Shown: piece by piece, positions 2,481 through 63,757 of the stretch | How the letters are laid out: each line of letters opens with the position of its first letter | Numbering within the stretch: position 1 is the stretch's first letter | Sequence record: MZ444140.1 | Direction: 5' to 3' (one strand) | DNA length: 64,000 bases | Translations under genes and position numbers: made by a program | The notes under the pieces: model-generated | Seen by the model: the letters and a program-made list of their open reading frames with translations, nothing else | Databases searched by the model: none | Told to the model about the DNA's origin: nothing

Positions 2481-3014
2481 TTAACTTTCTAGATAACGGA
2501 TAGTCCCATTTTCTAGATAACGTGCTGCGCCATTCTCTAATAGCCGGATAGTATCCGATGTATCATCAATACGTTGAATTAGTATATTACATTCACCATA
2601 GTAAGCATAACTACTCGACATAGCTACTATCGTGTATGGAACAACATCCGTAGTTGCATTGATTGGTGTTGTATCAAATGAAACATCATCTGGTCCAAGC
2701 TTCCAACCCCGTGAACGGTTGATTTCTTCAGCAATTGCTTTAGGTGTTAAAGTACCAACTATCTTAAGGATAGATCCTTCACCAATAGCTCGTGGATCAG
2801 CAAAATCTAACCGACGGTAAGTTAACATGTACTTAATGTCAGTAGTAATGTCGATCATTTCAATAAATGTACGTCCAGGCTCAATCGTGGTTGGACTAAA
2901 AAACATATCTTCAAATGTAACTGTTTCTGGTTTGAAGTTTATTTTTAAATCATCCCGCGCAAGTTTTACTAGCGCGTCCCTCGATGCCATGTCATACGGA
3001 AAGATATCCTGCAT
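2481..3014 (-). CDS. Virion/tail-associated protein (gp143 equivalent) with C-terminal RxLENG repeats
   Basis: 177 aa; YRRLDF motif shared with the gp126/127-like ORFs; ends IRLLENGAARYLENGTIRYLES. Confidence 0.75.
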   Translation of the reverse strand: MQDIFPYDMASRDALVKLARDDLKINFKPETVTFEDMFFSPTTIEPGRTFIEMIDITTDIKYMLTYRRLDFADPRAIGEGSILKIVGTLTPKAIAEEINRSRGWKLGPDDVSFDTTPINATTDVVPYTIVAMSSSYAYYGECNILIQRIDDTSDTIRLLENGAARYLENGTIRYLES

Positions 3015-27585: not shown

Positions 27586-27994
27586 TGAAATCTACCTTAA
27601 TCACAACGGCCTCCAAATCTACAATGTTGGGGAGCCTCTTTTTAGTTTGATGTACGGACCTTCCCTTAAAGGATTCACTCTTTTCCTTATTACTTGACTT
27701 CTGCCATTTATGCGGGTCACTCGAACAATATAACTTTTCGGTGGCCCGCTTAAACTGTTTTTCTTGAGGGATCTCCTCAGTGTTTTTCTTGGCATAATCT
27801 GTAATAAAGTCCTCTAGCCCTTTGGGCATAAAGGCATCCTGAACAGGATGGAATTCTTCAAAGAAAGTATTAATGTATTTATCATCATCTACGGTAGACA
27901 TCTTATTATCTACCATGGTATTTTTTTCTATAAGAGATACCCTCAGGGCATCCTGCCATCTTTCGATGACTTCTGGAAATAATTGAACGTTCAT
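27542..27994 (-). CDS. Hypothetical early protein (gp121 equivalent)
   Basis: 150 aa; first gene after the early promoter at 28038. Confidence 0.65.
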   Translation of the reverse strand: MNVQLFPEVIERWQDALRVSLIEKNTMVDNKMSTVDDDKYINTFFEEFHPVQDAFMPKGLEDFITDYAKKNTEEIPQEKQFKRATEKLYCSSDPHKWQKSSNKEKSESFKGRSVHQTKKRLPNIVDLEAVVIKVDFNGNTKNCGAYSSIS

Positions 27995-28037
27995 TTGGAT
28001 TAACCTATTTTTAAATTAGAAGATCATGATCATTACT

Positions 28038-28054
28038 GTAATATAGATCTTAAA
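28038..28054 (-). promoter_or_regulatory. Early (virion RNAP) promoter
   Basis: TTTAA-GATC-TATATTAC, matching the phiKZ early consensus (TATATTAC with upstream TTTaA); upstream of the nvRNAP-subunit operon. Confidence 0.8.
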
Positions 28055-28080
28055 CTTTTTTTAATGTAATACAACATAAA

Positions 28081-28100
28081 GCCCTCCCCGAAGGGAGGGC
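28081..28100 (-). terminator. MCP transcript terminator
   Basis: GCCCTCCC-TTCG-GGGAGGGC followed by TTTATGTTG on the minus strand. Confidence 0.85.
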
Positions 28101-28112
28101 CTATGTCTGTTA

Positions 28113-28190
28113 CTATTCTAACTTCCGGGCATTACCGTCTTCCAAATAACGGATAGTCCCATTTTCTAGATAACGGTAACCCTTTCCAGC
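28113..28190 (-). other. In-frame 25-codon extension after the MCP TGA stop (putative readthrough segment)
   Basis: TGA GCT GGA AAG GGT TAC CGT TAT CTA GAA AAT GGG ACT ATC CGT TAT TTG GAA GAC GGT AAT GCC CGG AAG TTA GAA TAG TAA = AGKGYRYLENGTIRYLEDGNARKLE; same motif as the gp143 C-terminus. Confidence 0.7.
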
Positions 28191-30434
28191 TCACGGCTTA
28201 AGATCAGCAAGCTTACCGTTGAACTGAGTTTCACCCATGACTTTCTGGAAGCCAGTGATCTTGAACTCTAGCGCGAACGGAATGTTGTTGACGTGTAGGT
28301 TGAACGGAATGGCCGCGATTTCGCGAGTAACCTGGTGACCACCACGAGTGATCGGTAGGTCAGCGATAACAGTAGATACGTAGAAGAACTGACCCCAGGA
28401 GAGGATGTCGTTTTCTTGTTGTACTGCGCGGGTCGGAATTACAACTAGCTTACCATCAAATAGCTGGTTGTTGGTGGAAACGATATCGTACTTGAGATAA
28501 GCACCTAGAGTACGGTCGTCACCTTTAGTCATTAGATAGTTAGCAATCTCTTTGTCGGAGCAGAAGAGATACATCGGAGTTTCATCCTGGTTACCGGAGA
28601 TAACACGGAAGGCAGCTTCAATGTTGGAATCACGGTGAGCCGGGAATAGCTCAGCTTTAACACAGTTTAGGATCGCAGCGCAAACGTCGTCCCAACGATC
28701 TTTAGACTTGATGGTGTCGATGACTTTCTCAAGATCTAGTTCTTTGTAACGATAGGTCGGACGCATTACAGCGGATAGTGCACCTTCGATGATACCAAAC
28801 TTCGGACGGTTGTAACCATTGTGTACAACTTCACGTAGTTGAGCAAGGTAGTTAAGCATGCGCTTAACAGCGTTGTTGCTGTTACGGATGTTGGTGTTAA
28901 CAGTTAGAGCTTTAACAACCTCACCCGGACCTTCATCGGTCATGGTGTCCATCGGTAGAGTTACAGGAGCGTGCATCGGGATCGGATGACGGAACTGTAG
29001 CGCACGGGTCTGTAGTAGGTGACCACGCTGACGACGGTTAGTGTTGGTGAAGCGAGTGTCTAGTTCGAAACCGATAACCGCTAGGTCAGTTAGCTGATCT
29101 AGAATAGCTTTAACAGCCGGGTCAGCATTATCCATTACCTGACCATCTTCGTTTAGAACTTTATCGACGTAAGTGTCGGTAGCACCAAACTTAGAATCGC
29201 CTTTGGATAGGCTGATTGTACCACCAAAACCAACGCTTAGACGTAGGCTTAGTTTAGCGGTCTTAAGATCATTGATAACACCGTCAGCTGAACCATCGAT
29301 GAAAGTGGTATCGCCACTAACAACTAGATCGTCGCTATCGAAACGGATAACAGCGTTCCGGGTATCACCAACTAGATCGGGCTGGAACACAGCGCGAGGT
29401 AGACGGTCAACCTTGAACTTAACAACTTTACCACCGAGTAGAACGAATAGGTTCTTTAGACGACCAGCCGGATCAATGGTGTCAGAAACTTCAAGCATGC
29501 CACGCTGGATGAGTAGGTTAGCATTGGAGTTACCCATTAGATCAAGACGTACGTTCGCTTTTAGCGGAGCAGTAGTGATAGTTAGGTTCTGCTCGTTCTT
29601 GATGGTGTACGGAGGAACAAGAGCCGGGTCTACGAAGAAATCAGCATTGGAGCCAGCCGGATCTAGGGCAGGAATTAGCGCAATGCTTTCGTCGTCGAGG
29701 ATGGAAGGATCACGATAGGCTTCTACCATGTTCACTTCTTCATTATCCATCTTAACGCCGGATACTTCGTGGTAAACGTCTTTCATTACAGCGATGTAAG
29801 GAAGAACCTGAACAACACCACCTTCAATCGGGTTGATAACGGTGGTCGGATAAATACGCTCAGCGAATTCATCTTGACGGCTAGCAGCTAGGTTATAACC
29901 AATAGTTACAACACGGAAATCACGCTGTGACTTCTCGTTATAGTTCTCTAGGCCAACACCATTTTCGAATACTTGAATGCCACCAGCAGGGCCATTGAAC
30001 TGATGCTGTACAACCTTAACATGATCTTCATTAGAAGCTTTAGCTTTGGTAATACCACGTAGTGCACGGATATATTTAGTTTCATCAGCACAGGCGATAG
30101 CAGCCATGGTAGCAGCAGTGATTTGGTTCTCACGGACACGTTCTTCACGAGCACGTACTTGAGGATCACTGGAACTTACTCGTTCGAAACCATAGTCGTT
30201 AACGAGCATTTGCATTTTGTTATAAATTGCAGCGGCATCTTGAATGTCGGTAGCTTGCACGGTACCGAAGTTTTCATGTGAAATGCTGCTAATAAGGGAA
30301 CGACCTTGACTAACAACGCTGTCATTTAGACCAATTTCACTTTCTAGGCGGCCAATGAAATCTTCCATTGAGAAGACTTCGTAATTCTTTTCGCCTTTGT
30401 GTTTAAACAGTTCTCTTAGGGCATGTACGCTCAT
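28191..30434 (-). CDS. gp120: Major capsid protein (phiKZ gp120 ortholog)
   Basis: 747 aa; strong codon bias; prohead-protease-type site VGLE|NYNE; length and position match phiKZ gp120. Confidence 0.93.
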   Translation of the reverse strand: MSVHALRELFKHKGEKNYEVFSMEDFIGRLESEIGLNDSVVSQGRSLISSISHENFGTVQATDIQDAAAIYNKMQMLVNDYGFERVSSSDPQVRAREERVRENQITAATMAAIACADETKYIRALRGITKAKASNEDHVKVVQHQFNGPAGGIQVFENGVGLENYNEKSQRDFRVVTIGYNLAASRQDEFAERIYPTTVINPIEGGVVQVLPYIAVMKDVYHEVSGVKMDNEEVNMVEAYRDPSILDDESIALIPALDPAGSNADFFVDPALVPPYTIKNEQNLTITTAPLKANVRLDLMGNSNANLLIQRGMLEVSDTIDPAGRLKNLFVLLGGKVVKFKVDRLPRAVFQPDLVGDTRNAVIRFDSDDLVVSGDTTFIDGSADGVINDLKTAKLSLRLSVGFGGTISLSKGDSKFGATDTYVDKVLNEDGQVMDNADPAVKAILDQLTDLAVIGFELDTRFTNTNRRQRGHLLQTRALQFRHPIPMHAPVTLPMDTMTDEGPGEVVKALTVNTNIRNSNNAVKRMLNYLAQLREVVHNGYNRPKFGIIEGALSAVMRPTYRYKELDLEKVIDTIKSKDRWDDVCAAILNCVKAELFPAHRDSNIEAAFRVISGNQDETPMYLFCSDKEIANYLMTKGDDRTLGAYLKYDIVSTNNQLFDGKLVVIPTRAVQQENDILSWGQFFYVSTVIADLPITRGGHQVTREIAAIPFNLHVNNIPFALEFKITGFQKVMGETQFNGKLADLKP

Positions 30435-31179: not shown

Positions 31180-32727
31180 ATGTCAAGTCCAAAACAATTA
31201 CTCGTTTCATGTATCACTCTATTATGTTTAGAAAATCGAGAAGATTCTCCTGTGGAACCATCCAATGAATTGGTTACCGAGATTCTTGATACTCTAAATG
31301 ATAAGGGTGGTACATTAGATGTAGATCATGGTCGACAAACATTTTTAGATCTTCGTAATCTACTAGTGGATCTAAATAAGAAACAGAAAGCATATTTCCC
31401 AGCTACCCAACAGGTATTACAATCACTACAAGTATGTTGTCGTGAAGAAAGTTATCTATACGATGCTGTTAAAAATGCGGTAGAAGAAGAATTTCCAAAT
31501 GGCATGGCATTAGCCATGCGTGTAACTTCATATCGTCGTGATCTAAATAGCTACTTAGCTGATGAGAAGGTAAAAGCTATTGTAAAAGAATGTTCATCAA
31601 AAATTCTTTTCAATAGAGGCTCTGCTGATATTCCGGCAATCATTAATGAAATGGCAACCAGAGCTGACCCATATATTCGCGCGCGTGCTGAAGAGAAACA
31701 CCCAGCTGAAATGGGTGCACTTGATTTTGGTAATTTAGATTCTATTGAAGGCTTCTTTGAGGAAGCTAAAACTATTCTTTCCCCAAATGGTGCTTTCCGT
31801 ACTGGATGGAAAGGTTTTAACAGGATGCTTGGTGATCTGGGTGCATTAAAACGTGGTGAATTTATTATCGGTGGTGGCCTACAACATCAATATAAATCTG
31901 GCGTTTCTATGAGTCTATTTTGCCATGTGTGTCTATTTAATAAACCATACATGCGTGATATCAATAAGAAACCATTAGTAATGTTTATTACTCTTGAGAA
32001 TGAGATTCCGGATAACCTTATTTTCATTTATGAGTATATTTACGAAAATGAAACAGGTATCAAGGTAGATCGTAGTTCTATTAGTAAAGCTGAAGCAGCT
32101 GAATATGTATCAGCTCGTCTCCGTGAAAATGGTTTTGAACCAGTAATGTATCGTTTTGACCCAACTGAATTTACGATTGCTGGTTTAGTTAACTACCTAG
32201 ATACATATCAAGCACGTGGTTATGAACTACAATATCTCTGCGTAGATTATCTAAACATGTTGCCTAAAACTGGATTAGTGACCAGTGTAGCAGGTGATGA
32301 CGTTCGTCTCCTATTTAGGCGAATGCGTAACTATACTGCACCACGTGGTATCACATTCTTTAGTCCGCATCAGTTAAGTTCTCAGGCATTAGAACTAATC
32401 AGGGATAATATCCCACCAGAAGACTTTGTTAAACAAGTTGCTAACAAAGGTTACTATGACGGTTGTCGCCGACTTGGACAAGAACCTGATCTGGAATTCT
32501 TCTTCCACATTGTTAAAGTAAGTGGTAAGTATTATCTAACTGTACAACGTGGTAAACACCGTAACGTTGTAAGTGATAGTAAGCATCACTATTTTGTTAT
32601 GCCGTTTGATCCAGACCGTATCGGTGGCATTAGATGGGATATCGATAAAGAAGAAAACAATTACATGGATTTCGTACCAAGTCTTAGTAATATGCAAGCA
32701 ACTGGTGGAGATGACTGGGGATATTAA
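31180..32727 (+). CDS. dnaB: DnaB-like replicative helicase (phiKZ gp118 ortholog)
   Basis: FRTGWKGFNRMLG, LKRGEFII, Walker B LCVDYL, SPHQLS and RGKHR motifs of SF4 helicases. Confidence 0.9.
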   Translation: MSSPKQLLVSCITLLCLENREDSPVEPSNELVTEILDTLNDKGGTLDVDHGRQTFLDLRNLLVDLNKKQKAYFPATQQVLQSLQVCCREESYLYDAVKNAVEEEFPNGMALAMRVTSYRRDLNSYLADEKVKAIVKECSSKILFNRGSADIPAIINEMATRADPYIRARAEEKHPAEMGALDFGNLDSIEGFFEEAKTILSPNGAFRTGWKGFNRMLGDLGALKRGEFIIGGGLQHQYKSGVSMSLFCHVCLFNKPYMRDINKKPLVMFITLENEIPDNLIFIYEYIYENETGIKVDRSSISKAEAAEYVSARLRENGFEPVMYRFDPTEFTIAGLVNYLDTYQARGYELQYLCVDYLNMLPKTGLVTSVAGDDVRLLFRRMRNYTAPRGITFFSPHQLSSQALELIRDNIPPEDFVKQVANKGYYDGCRRLGQEPDLEFFFHIVKVSGKYYLTVQRGKHRNVVSDSKHHYFVMPFDPDRIGGIRWDIDKEENNYMDFVPSLSNMQATGGDDWGY

Positions 32728-32736
32728 CAACATAAA

Positions 32737-32756
32737 GCTCTCCCTTCGGGGAGAGC
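32737..32756 (+). terminator. Hairpin after the helicase
   Basis: GCTCTCCC-TTCG-GGGAGAGC; weak U-tract. Confidence 0.65.
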
Positions 32757-32781
32757 ACTATAATTTTAATAGGTAATCTAA

Positions 32782-40648: not shown

Positions 40649-40671
40649 ATGGTTTGAATATACGACATAAA

Positions 40672-40691
40672 GCCTTCCCCTGAGGGAAGGC
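40672..40691 (-). terminator. Intrinsic terminator
   Basis: GCCTTCCC-CTGA-GGGAAGGC; TTTATG follows on the minus strand. Confidence 0.8.
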
Positions 40692-40696
40692 CAATG

Positions 40697-41185
40697 TTAA
40701 ACCGATGAATCTATCCACGGTGGATAAACAACCACAATCTGGTTAGGCATGTGATTAGACCAATCTTCAATGATAGTTCTAACATCAGAGAAATCTAATC
40801 CACCATTAGCACACCCTAGAGGTGGTATGATAATTTTCCAATCTGGATGAATACAGTCTTCTTCATTTTCCGCAGAATCCGATACGTTCTCCATCATCCA
40901 CTCTAGACCACGTTCAATGAAACTAATTTGAGATGGGTTCCGCCAGTTATCCTTAGTAGGAAACATCATGAAACGTTTACCATCGGATGCTTTGTAAATA
41001 ACCGGATTACCAATAGTAATAATTCTCTTTTTGCAATCGTGTTTGTATCTTTCAAAAAGTTCAGGATACTTTTCTTTAAACGATTTGGCTAAACCAGCGC
41101 CCATGACGCCAACAACATTAACAGTGATTAGATAAAGATCACCAGGTACATTGAATATATCTTTACCTATAATAAATTCAGCCAT
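40697..41185 (-). CDS. Macrodomain ADP-ribosylhydrolase, DarG/TARG1-like (gp104 equivalent)
   Basis: GKDIF, TVNVVGVMGAGLAKSFKEKYPE, FPTKDNWRNPS and IPPLGCANGGL motifs. Confidence 0.9.
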   Translation of the reverse strand: MAEFIIGKDIFNVPGDLYLITVNVVGVMGAGLAKSFKEKYPELFERYKHDCKKRIITIGNPVIYKASDGKRFMMFPTKDNWRNPSQISFIERGLEWMMENVSDSAENEEDCIHPDWKIIIPPLGCANGGLDFSDVRTIIEDWSNHMPNQIVVVYPPWIDSSV

Positions 41186-57059: not shown

Positions 57060-57590
57060 TCAGTCCTTATCTATTACTTCTACAGATCCAAATAGTAGAT
57101 GTAGGGTATACATTAGATCATTCATACCGTTTTTGTGTTTAACCCAATTCTGGATCATTGAAACAGTATCTAGATCTAATTTTAACTCATTAAAGAGAGT
57201 AGCAATTTCAGCGCGCGGTTCAATGAGTTGTGCACCAGCATCTGGTTCAGTAGCTAGTAACATTGGCCATTGGGTAATTGAAATACGTCGATGACCCGTA
57301 GCAATGTATCGAACAGTATCTAATAGGAATTGATAATTATAACTATCAATATTACTATTATTGTCCTGTAGAATAAACCAATTATAGTTTCCGCTAAAAA
57401 GACGAATAGCACAAGCTAGAACTTTCTTATGGAATTCCCAATATGCAGTTTGTGCAGGAAAGTTGGTAAAGATAAGATATAGTTCTTCAACTTGAGGATC
57501 ACCGGGACGAGCAGTGAACCGTGAAATGGCCTGTTGTTGACCACCTGAGTAATTACGACCAAATGGGCGTACAGCATTAGTTGCTGGCAT
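57060..57590 (-). CDS. Minor head protein (gp91 equivalent)
   Basis: Start probably 57590 (GGAGGG RBS); alternative coupled start at 57605. Confidence 0.65.
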   Translation of the reverse strand: MPATNAVRPFGRNYSGGQQQAISRFTARPGDPQVEELYLIFTNFPAQTAYWEFHKKVLACAIRLFSGNYNWFILQDNNSNIDSYNYQFLLDTVRYIATGHRRISITQWPMLLATEPDAGAQLIEPRAEIATLFNELKLDLDTVSMIQNWVKHKNGMNDLMYTLHLLFGSVEVIDKD

Positions 57591-57604
57591 ATCAATGCCC
57601 TCCA

Positions 57605-58534
57605 TTAGTGACCAAGAGATAGTAGATCACGATGGTTAGCAAAGAACTCAGATGCGCGATCTTGGATCATACCTAGGCGATAGTTATAATCAGAGATACG
57701 AATTTCATACTCTTTAATAAGCTTCTGTAGGCGTGCATCCACTTTACCATTACTTTGCATTTCCCGCATTTCTTGTAAACGTAGTTGAAGTGCAAGGAAT
57801 TCTTGCTCAGCTTCTTTAAAACGTTCAACCTGATACTCAGCTAAGAACTTGCCAAATAGCACGAACGGGTTCTGACGAGGTGAGAAGCCATCCATGTTAA
57901 GTGGATCACGTTGAGCTATAGAGAGAGCACTCACAGCTACATCATAAGTACCTTCATTGACTTCAGCACTAGATGCACGACTTAAGCGTTGTTTCAGTTC
58001 ATTAGTCTTAAGACTCATTGCTGGATACAGAGTAATGAATTGCGCCATATTAGTGTATAGCCATTCTTTCTCAGCACGAGATGATTTTAATTCTGTAGCC
58101 TTACCTAATTTCATTGCTTCTTGTGCAATTAGATTTAGTAGTAGTTTACGGCCATAACGAATATAGAAACTAAGACCATCAACAAAACGTAACATGTTTG
58201 CACGGTCAAAGGTTAGATTAGAGTTAGTAAACTGAATAGCAAATAAACGCCGGATTTCGCTTTCGATCATATCAAAGCTACCACGAATATTTGAAAGAGT
58301 ATCCAGTACTAGTTTAATCGGTTCAGTATTAAAACTAATCGCTCGCCGTAGTTCAGTAGATAACCGCATACCTAAATCTGATTTAAGTTGCATATTACCA
58401 AATACTTCACCTACATCGTCAATAATTGGTGCGAGAGTTGCATCATATTCTTCACGTAATGAACGGATTTGATTTAATAGTTCACGACGTTCAGTAACTG
58501 GTGCGAGTTCACGTACATAATCAATAATTCTCAT
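57605..58534 (-). CDS. Inner head protein (gp90 equivalent)
   Basis: ~309 aa helical protein; AAGGA RBS; gene order matches phiKZ. Confidence 0.7.
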   Translation of the reverse strand: MRIIDYVRELAPVTERRELLNQIRSLREEYDATLAPIIDDVGEVFGNMQLKSDLGMRLSTELRRAISFNTEPIKLVLDTLSNIRGSFDMIESEIRRLFAIQFTNSNLTFDRANMLRFVDGLSFYIRYGRKLLLNLIAQEAMKLGKATELKSSRAEKEWLYTNMAQFITLYPAMSLKTNELKQRLSRASSAEVNEGTYDVAVSALSIAQRDPLNMDGFSPRQNPFVLFGKFLAEYQVERFKEAEQEFLALQLRLQEMREMQSNGKVDARLQKLIKEYEIRISDYNYRLGMIQDRASEFFANHRDLLSLGH

Positions 58535-59744: not shown

Positions 59745-63716
<3,972 letters not shown>

Positions 63717-63724
63717 GGTCATAA

Positions 63725-63744
63725 GCCCTCCCCTAGGGGAGGGC
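63725..63744. terminator. Bidirectional terminator
   Basis: CATAA-GCCCTCCCC-TA-GGGGAGGGC-ATTATG between convergent genes. Confidence 0.85.
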
Positions 63745-63757
63745 ATTATGTTGTATT

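Follow-up and report, generated by a model that had tools for sequence, protein, structure and literature searches.

The major capsid protein gene (MCP, gp120) of phiKZ-type phages ends in UGA, and behind this codon lie an in-frame tail and an RNA stem-loop. By its pattern of conservation the tail is very probably translated through read-through of the UGA, and by the same comparative measure the outer stem of the stem-loop is a conserved RNA structure under nucleotide-level selection, at the canonical distance from the stop codon. The best reading of the hairpin is that of a putative read-through stimulator, to which we give an even chance.

The capsid of phiKZ, the model for nucleus-forming jumbo phages, is known at near-atomic resolution. 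The stretch of DNA analysed (the window) comprises 64,000 nucleotides of record MZ444140.1. Over the 801 bp tested (27900-28700) it is 99.4% identical to phiKZ and 100% identical to Pseudomonas phage PA7 (MZ444140), and the phiKZ counterpart of the tested 3' part lies inside PHIKZ120, annotated as major head protein. Its last codons read AAG CCG UGA on the mRNA strand (Table 1). TGA is a minority stop among the long open reading frames of the window (TAA 42, TGA 8, TAG 6). The phiKZ reference has GAG in place of the UAG that ends the tail, and its tail is one codon longer.

Table 1. Features at the end of the capsid gene and the related tail of gp143 (window coordinates)
Feature	Position	Strand	Basis
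Major capsid protein gene gp120	28191..30434	(-)	747 codons and UGA stop; ORF list, translation
Putatively leaky stop codon UGA, context CCG-UGA-GCU	28191..28193	(-)	TGA invariant in 20/20 tailed relatives
8-nt spacer GCUGGAAA between UGA and hairpin	28183..28190	(-)	No indel in alignment columns 4-11, 20/20
56-nt stem-loop	28127..28182	(-)	MFE -24.7 kcal/mol, z -5.39
Outer stem, 5' arm (GGG ... CCGU)	28173..28182	(-)	Third-codon columns 12 and 21 fixed while amino acid changes
Outer stem, 3' arm (ACGG ... CCC)	28127..28138	(-)	Columns 63 and 72 fixed C
25-codon in-frame putative read-through tail (AGKGY RYLENGTI RYLEDGNA RKLE)	28116..28190	(-)	Frame open in 20/20
Tandem stops UAG UAA closing the tail	28110..28115	(-)	Sequence
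Predicted intrinsic terminator of capsid mRNA (GC stem, UUCG loop, U-rich tail)	28073..28101	(-)	Predicted fold
Paralogous tag copy, gp143 C-terminus (ORF 2481-3014)	2481..2555	(-)	94% nucleotide identity over 36 nt, against 28140-28175

A conserved open frame behind the capsid stop codon

MCP 3' ends gathered from GenBank phages and IMG/VR contigs gave 20 distinct sequences whose MCPs are at least 70% identical over the C-terminal 200 residues. They include phiKZ, PhiPA3, PS119XW, Phabio, 201phi2-1, RVTF4, Psa21 and metagenomic relatives, and represent the genera Phikzvirus, Miltoncavirus, Pawinskivirus, Phabiovirus, Serwervirus and Tepukevirus. The capsid stop is TGA in all 20 and is followed in each by 25 to 30 in-frame sense codons. 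Frame 0 contains no stop in any of them, whereas frame +1 has one to three stops in every sequence and frame +2 has stops in 17. The encoded peptide keeps the module R-x-x-E-(D/N)-G-x-x-R-Y-x-E-(D/S)-G-...-R-x-L-E, built of R-x-L-E-D-G repeats. Variation is greatest at third codon positions (in the tail the three positions have entropies of 0.83, 0.75 and 1.08), and all alignment gaps in the tail are multiples of three. A leaky-type stop followed by a conserved in-frame coding extension, the arrangement of the class described by Firth et al. (2011), was found in 20 of 20 sequences. The distant chimalliviruses RAY, RSL2, RTH11, FBKp24 and pVp-JHP1101 have a TAA stop and no tail, as do three metagenomic contigs at 66% identity.

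The immediate context of the stop is of a kind with known leaky coat genes. The hexanucleotides here, UGAGCU and UGAACU, agree with those given as leaky for coat genes of the Fiersviridae, UGAGCR in FI and UGAACU in Qbeta (PMC13517186). The coding-type conservation of the in-frame tail, together with the conserved UGA, in 20 relatives makes it very likely that read-through is real. This supports the proposal of the preliminary description that the UGA is recoded.

Two other places with an open frame behind TGA were seen. The MCP gene of the Escherichia phage Goslar ends in TGA followed by 28 open codons of an unrelated acidic peptide (L047:1086-1175), an opening expected by chance in about one case in four. 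In the window, a 181-residue ORF at 57060-57605 (-) ends in TGA-G, and the next gene, whose ATG lies four codons on, uses the same frame. The first 75 nt after the stop of the ORF fold to -29.6 kcal/mol and are as stable as in the capsid gene case. The two are probably merely adjacent genes.

The hairpin fold and the peptide repeat

The preliminary description placed, on the mRNA, an 8-nt spacer and a long stem-loop behind the UGA and had folded the latter by eye. All three elements are present on the minus strand, and RNAfold returns the identical architecture for 28182-28127, namely an outer stem interrupted by a 2-nt bulge, then a middle helix of 6 bp and an apical helix of 5 bp, capped by the 6-nt loop GACUAU. 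The same hairpin is retained when it is folded within 191 nt of context. Its energy of -24.7 kcal/mol compares with -11.1 ± 2.5 kcal/mol for dinucleotide shuffles, and none of 200 shuffles was as stable (z -5.39). An H-type pseudoknot of the MuLV type, pairing the apical loop with the tandem stops, was considered and rejected, the 5-nt match in the window being lost in the phiKZ reference and absent in seven of ten relatives.

The shuffle z-score overstates selection for structure, as the hairpin sequence is a tandem 24-nt coding repeat (RYLENGTI/RYLEDGNA) and its recodings fold almost equally well. Within the repeat, Arg CGU (with a C before it) is complementary to the GAC-GG of Asp-Gly, so a sequence coding for this peptide tends to fold on itself. 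Synonymous recodings, in which the same peptide was written with codons drawn from each phage's own MCP codon usage, were almost as stable as the native sequence (z -0.82 in the window, mean z -0.26 over 20 relatives). Consequently the shuffle z-score and the inner helices carry little weight. Comparison of MFE with synonymous recodings gave no signal as a test of selection, and helix- and site-specific tests were used in its place.

The peptide repeat accounts, as a by-product, for most of the overall stability of the hairpin and above all for the inner helices. The phiKZ gp143 gene also contains the inner hairpin. Among relatives of the window sequence the middle helix shows partial conservation only, and RNAalifold on all 20 sequences retains just the 5-bp core and an apical GG/CC, with a small covariation term. 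The inner helices drawn in the preliminary description are thus recovered by prediction, but they are largely inherent in the peptide repeat and only partly conserved.

Selection on the outer stem

The outer stem behaves differently from the inner helices of the repeat. In each of the 20 sequences 8 nt separate the UGA from the GGG with which the stem begins, although the spacer itself differs in sequence between clades; in the window the stem-loop that starts there is stable (-24.7 kcal/mol). Such a spacing typifies the known read-through stimulators (PMC3159437, PMC13517186).

Within the tail, third-codon positions vary least at columns 12, 21, 63 and 72. All four pair with an invariant G or C in the two core helices, which are GGG/CCC (columns 12-14 with 71-73, window 28180-28182 with 28127-28129) and CCGUN/NACGG (columns 21-25 with 61-65, window 28172-28176 with 28135-28139). 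Column 12 is G in all 20 sequences and column 21 is C in 19. Bases competent for pairing were observed at columns 12, 21 and 63 in 20, 19 and 19 of the 20 sequences, against 7.4, 9.1 and 13.0 expected from codon usage, and rare codons such as CTC and GTC occupy stem positions. The third base is fixed despite turnover of the amino acid at codons 10-12 (K/P/E), 19-21 (Y/L/F/G/V/S/I) and 70-72 (A/T/P/S/V), the last of which is invariably xCC or xTC with a free first base. As a baseline, among the last 258 codon columns of the MCP, one of the 42 columns with at least three amino acids was equally fixed, and none of the 19 with at least four. The tail has three columns that combine a fixed third base with a changing amino acid, and every one is in the stem. 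Synonymous-site conservation in the stem arms, as in the Firth 2011 class, was therefore found here.

Pairing itself points the same way. The mean pair probability of the consensus helices is 0.63 and 0.47 in native sequences, compared with 0.27 and 0.05 in recoded ones. In alignments of the relatives 75 to 84% of hairpin cells are paired, against 35 to 57% in slid controls; for the outer stem across all 20 sequences the figure is 83.8%, with seven compensatory pairs (27 cells). In the phiKZ/PhiPA3/PS119XW/Phabio/201phi2-1 branch, represented by ten sequences, pairing in the outer stem reaches 90.7%, compared with 42 to 59% in slid controls. Five pairs in this branch show compensatory changes (columns 17-20 with 66-69, and 24 with 62; 14 cells), and the covariation score was matched by none of 500 shuffles. 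The tails of gp143, which encode the same peptide, serve as an internal negative control and do not keep the helix-forming codons.

The Psa21 branch is less uniform in its fold. The long hairpin is the predicted structure in only about half of its sequences, and an alternative of two hairpins, which uses the same invariant GGG and begins 6 nt after the UGA, is equally compatible with the alignment (95.6% of cells paired versus 93.5%). The sequences of this branch are too uniform for covariation to separate the two folds. The expectation that the stem would prove conserved and covarying in relatives was thus borne out for the outer stem of the phiKZ branch, whereas in the Psa21 branch another fold does equally well.

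A second, small hairpin (CCGC/GCGG) is formed by the last tail codons, CGC CGx CTA GAG CGG, in PS119XW and the 201phi2-1 branch (L012, L014, L018, L020 and L022). It ends at the second stop codon, and the window does not have it.

The main rival to a stimulatory hairpin is that read-through is real but set by the context of the stop codon alone, as in Qbeta, the hairpin being a side effect of encoding R-x-L-E-D-G. We regard this as rather unlikely, though it accounts for much of what is seen: synonymous recodings match the native stability, the Arg and Asp-Gly codons are inherently complementary and give the inner hairpin again in phiKZ gp143, the fold is not uniform within the Psa21 branch, and the UGA is followed by G or A and preceded by Pro, Ala or Gly, in hexanucleotides that match the leaky ones of Qbeta and FI (PMC13517186). 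Moreover, a stimulator may not be needed, since the UGA of Qbeta is read through at about 3-5% (PMC13517186) with no described structure. What stop context leaves unexplained are the third bases fixed amid amino-acid change, the rare codons at stem positions, the compensatory pairs, and the large excess of consensus-helix probability over recodings. Nor does it explain why gp143 tails do not keep the outer-stem helices.

Transcript ends and the downstream region

Contigs that cover the capsid gene in four RNA libraries continue past the UGA and across the hairpin, with no base change at the stop codon. Contigs of two runs end at 28073, just past the terminator, with the adapter abutting in one. 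No contig of the four libraries ends at the 3' edge of the hairpin, although these are assembled contigs, from which rare 3' ends could escape. The sequence directly 3' of the hairpin has no U-run. A role for the hairpin as an intrinsic terminator or processing site was rejected on these two grounds, the missing U-tract and the missing contig end.

The outer stem might instead be selected for another task, such as protection of the mRNA 3' end, binding of a phage or host protein, or pausing of ribosomes for termination or quality control. Constraint at the nucleotide level is what such a task would produce, and the late mRNA concerned is highly expressed and carries the stem in its 3' region, shortly before the terminator. 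This explanation is nevertheless improbable: none of the 20 sequences departs from the 8-nt distance to the UGA, the read-through frame encloses the stem, the element is missing wherever the UGA and tail are missing, and the RNA contigs, which in two runs stop at the terminator (28073), stop in none of the four libraries at the 3' edge of the hairpin.

Several features of the surrounding transcription units were also noted. About 25-35 nt past the capsid terminator, at 28031-28047 (-), is the motif TCTATATTAC, which also occurs in all six GenBank relatives read at this place, and RNA contigs of the downstream gene, gp121, start at about 28031-28036. Both observations are consistent with a conserved phage promoter immediately after the terminator. 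Similar intrinsic terminators lie at 28069-28106, 32725-32762, 40660-40697 and 63713-63750 and form a family with a GC stem, a 4-nt loop and common flanking bases (ACAACATAAAGCC...).

A tag shared with gp143

A near-identical DNA copy of the tail (94% over 36 nt) is present at 2487-2546, where it encodes the C-terminus of a 177-residue ORF. This ORF (2481-3014) is PHIKZ143, annotated as a virion structural protein (phrog_2935). Since the phiKZ genome holds only two copies, at the ends of the MCP and of gp143, the tail is not a dispersed repeat, and a genome-wide repeat element was ruled out by this count. The same type of peptide module forms the C-terminus of gp143 in ten homologues. A Pfam search with the 25-residue tail gave no match, and a PHROGs search gave a weak match to the tail of the gp143 family and nothing else.

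AlphaFold2 gave a model of gp143 of mediocre quality (pLDDT 69), in which the tail has low confidence, and the only fold match of the model is to a chain from the outer peripheral region of the phiKZ baseplate. A sequence search of the PDB did not find gp143 in any solved structure.

The gp143 tail of the window (2481-2555) reads ENG-T-I (GGG ACT ATC), identical to the MCP tail (28140-28175), while the gp143 tails of the phiKZ reference and of another PA7 record read ENG-Q-I (GGT CAA ATC). From these codons this looks like a recent exchange between the tag copies, resembling gene conversion from the capsid tail into gp143. Such an exchange suggests that the two tags are interchangeable.

The exchange with gp143 in the phiKZ lineage would also fit an untranslated tail, a decaying remnant or a silent copy of the gp143 tail, the hairpin then being a feature of the 3' UTR that is structural or due to chance; in keeping with this, the published gp120 structures are modelled only to residue 747 (PMC11297242). 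We hold an untranslated tail to be highly improbable. Divergence across genera would erase a remnant, yet all 20 diverged genomes have an open frame and an invariant TGA, indels come only in multiples of three, and the peptide motif is kept while third positions vary.

Decoding of the UGA and proposed mechanism

That the hairpin is a bacterial SECIS and the UGA a selenocysteine codon, an analogy also drawn in the preliminary description, is almost certainly wrong: the apical loop does lie about 32 nt past the UGA and begins with G in the window, and the host, Pseudomonas aeruginosa, possesses Sec machinery, but the loops of four relatives differ (GACUAU, CAACGU, UACUAC and CACUCG), the 201phi2-1 branch has no apical helix (its second Arg is AGA or AGG), it is the base of the stem that is conserved and not the SelB-binding top, and an Rfam search that included SECIS and leader families returned nothing near threshold.

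Read-through driven by a phage suppressor tRNA was likewise rejected, as none of the tRNAs listed for phiKZ, PhiPA3, 201phi2-1, Psa21 and Phabio, all of them included, has the anticodon UCA. Psa21 encodes its own tRNA-Trp (CCA; L077:1498-1573), a near-cognate decoder of UGA, which phiKZ, PhiPA3, 201phi2-1 and Phabio do not.

On this proposal the major capsid gene of phiKZ-type phages would end in a site of programmed UGA read-through. Most ribosomes would stop at the UGA and release the 747-residue capsid protein. A minority would decode the UGA with a near-cognate host tRNA, most likely tRNA-Trp, and read on through 25 codons to UAG UAA, adding a C-terminal R-x-L-E-D-G tag that mimics the tail of gp143. 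With UGA in the A site, about 11-12 nt downstream fill the mRNA channel (PMC13517186), so a stem that starts at the ninth nucleotide after the UGA would meet the mRNA entrance and helicase region of the ribosome. There it may slow RF2-dependent termination or favour accommodation of near-cognate tRNA-Trp, and in this way enlarge the share of extended gp120.

The likely position of the tag follows from the known capsid. In the centre of every hexamer the C-terminal arms of gp120 (residues 728-747) come together as a six-helix bundle, and in pentons the arm reaches the outer protein gp244; the published model ends at residue 747 (PMC11297242). As the arm lies at the centre of the capsomer, an added tail would probably be displayed there. 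With 1620 subunits per capsid, read-through at a Qbeta-like 3-5% would give tens of tagged subunits per virion.

More tentatively, and with the odds somewhat against it, the putative stem-loop stimulator of phiKZ-type phages may supply a minority of capsid subunits with a docking tag of the gp143 type at capsomer centres. A partner associated with the tail or baseplate would be recruited or mimicked by this tag, and full infectivity would depend on the tag as it does on A1 in Qbeta. Searches of the literature returned no experiment, proteomic peptide or cryo-EM density for the capsid tail, and full-text searches returned no report of gp120 read-through, of an extended second form of the MCP or of this hairpin.

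Comparison with known systems

Both elements of the proposal are already known in kind, as read-through assisted by a 3' structure and as extended coat proteins of the Qbeta type. The setting would be new, with a 56-nt element inside a 25-codon tag, acting on bacterial ribosomes in a dsDNA jumbo phage. Literature searches found no proven hairpin stimulator of read-through on bacterial ribosomes other than for selenocysteine, and we know of none. If the hairpin stimulates, it would be the first natural 3' RNA structure of which we are aware to promote stop-codon read-through on bacterial ribosomes outside selenocysteine insertion, and a bacterial counterpart of the read-through stimulators of alphaviruses and tobraviruses. 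The capsid would then contain a hidden minor species carrying a tag in common with the virion protein gp143. This would bear on capsid decoration, on assembly and on phage engineering, as the C-terminus would tolerate display. For annotation, a capsid gene that ends in TGA and has a conserved open tail can be offered as a rule for recognizing such cases.

The closest structural parallels are the 3' stem-loops that stimulate UGA read-through in alphaviruses, in tobra-, peclu-, furo- and coltiviruses and in Drosophila kelch (Firth et al. 2011, PMC3159437). Like the phiKZ hairpin, these combine a UGA, a spacer of about 8 nt and a long imperfect stem, with synonymous-site conservation and compensatory substitutions inside the read-through frame. 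They act on eukaryotic ribosomes with eRF1, and their stems enclose 100-270 nt, whereas the phiKZ element belongs to a dsDNA phage of bacteria (RF2), has only 56 nt within a 25-codon tail and is a putative stimulator. The pseudoknot at the gag-pol UAG of MuLV shares the 8-nt spacer, which sets the structure at the mRNA entrance of the ribosome (PMC3159437), but is of the H-type, while the phiKZ hairpin has no conserved pairing between loop and downstream sequence. Bacterial SECIS elements are also hairpins directly 3' of an in-frame UGA in a bacterial system. They depend on a conserved apical loop and bulge (for SelB), in contrast to the variable apex and conserved base found here.

Among phage structural genes, T7 gene 10A/10B and other cases of recoding in capsid and tail genes likewise give a fixed minority of a structural protein an alternative C-terminus (PMC5009743), and 3' hairpins of the dnaX type are proven stimulators of frameshifting on bacterial ribosomes (reviewed in PMC5009743). 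Events of the T7 type are frameshifts at slippery sites, whereas the phiKZ tail is in frame and would be reached by read-through of a stop codon. In this respect the nearest relative is A1 of Qbeta, where a major coat gene with a leaky UGA in the same hexanucleotide context (UGAACU or UGAGCR) yields a minor, C-terminally extended subunit. Qbeta is an ssRNA phage with an extension of about 200 residues and no described 3' stimulatory structure; phiKZ-type phages are 280-kb dsDNA jumbo phages with a 25-residue tag and a conserved hairpin.
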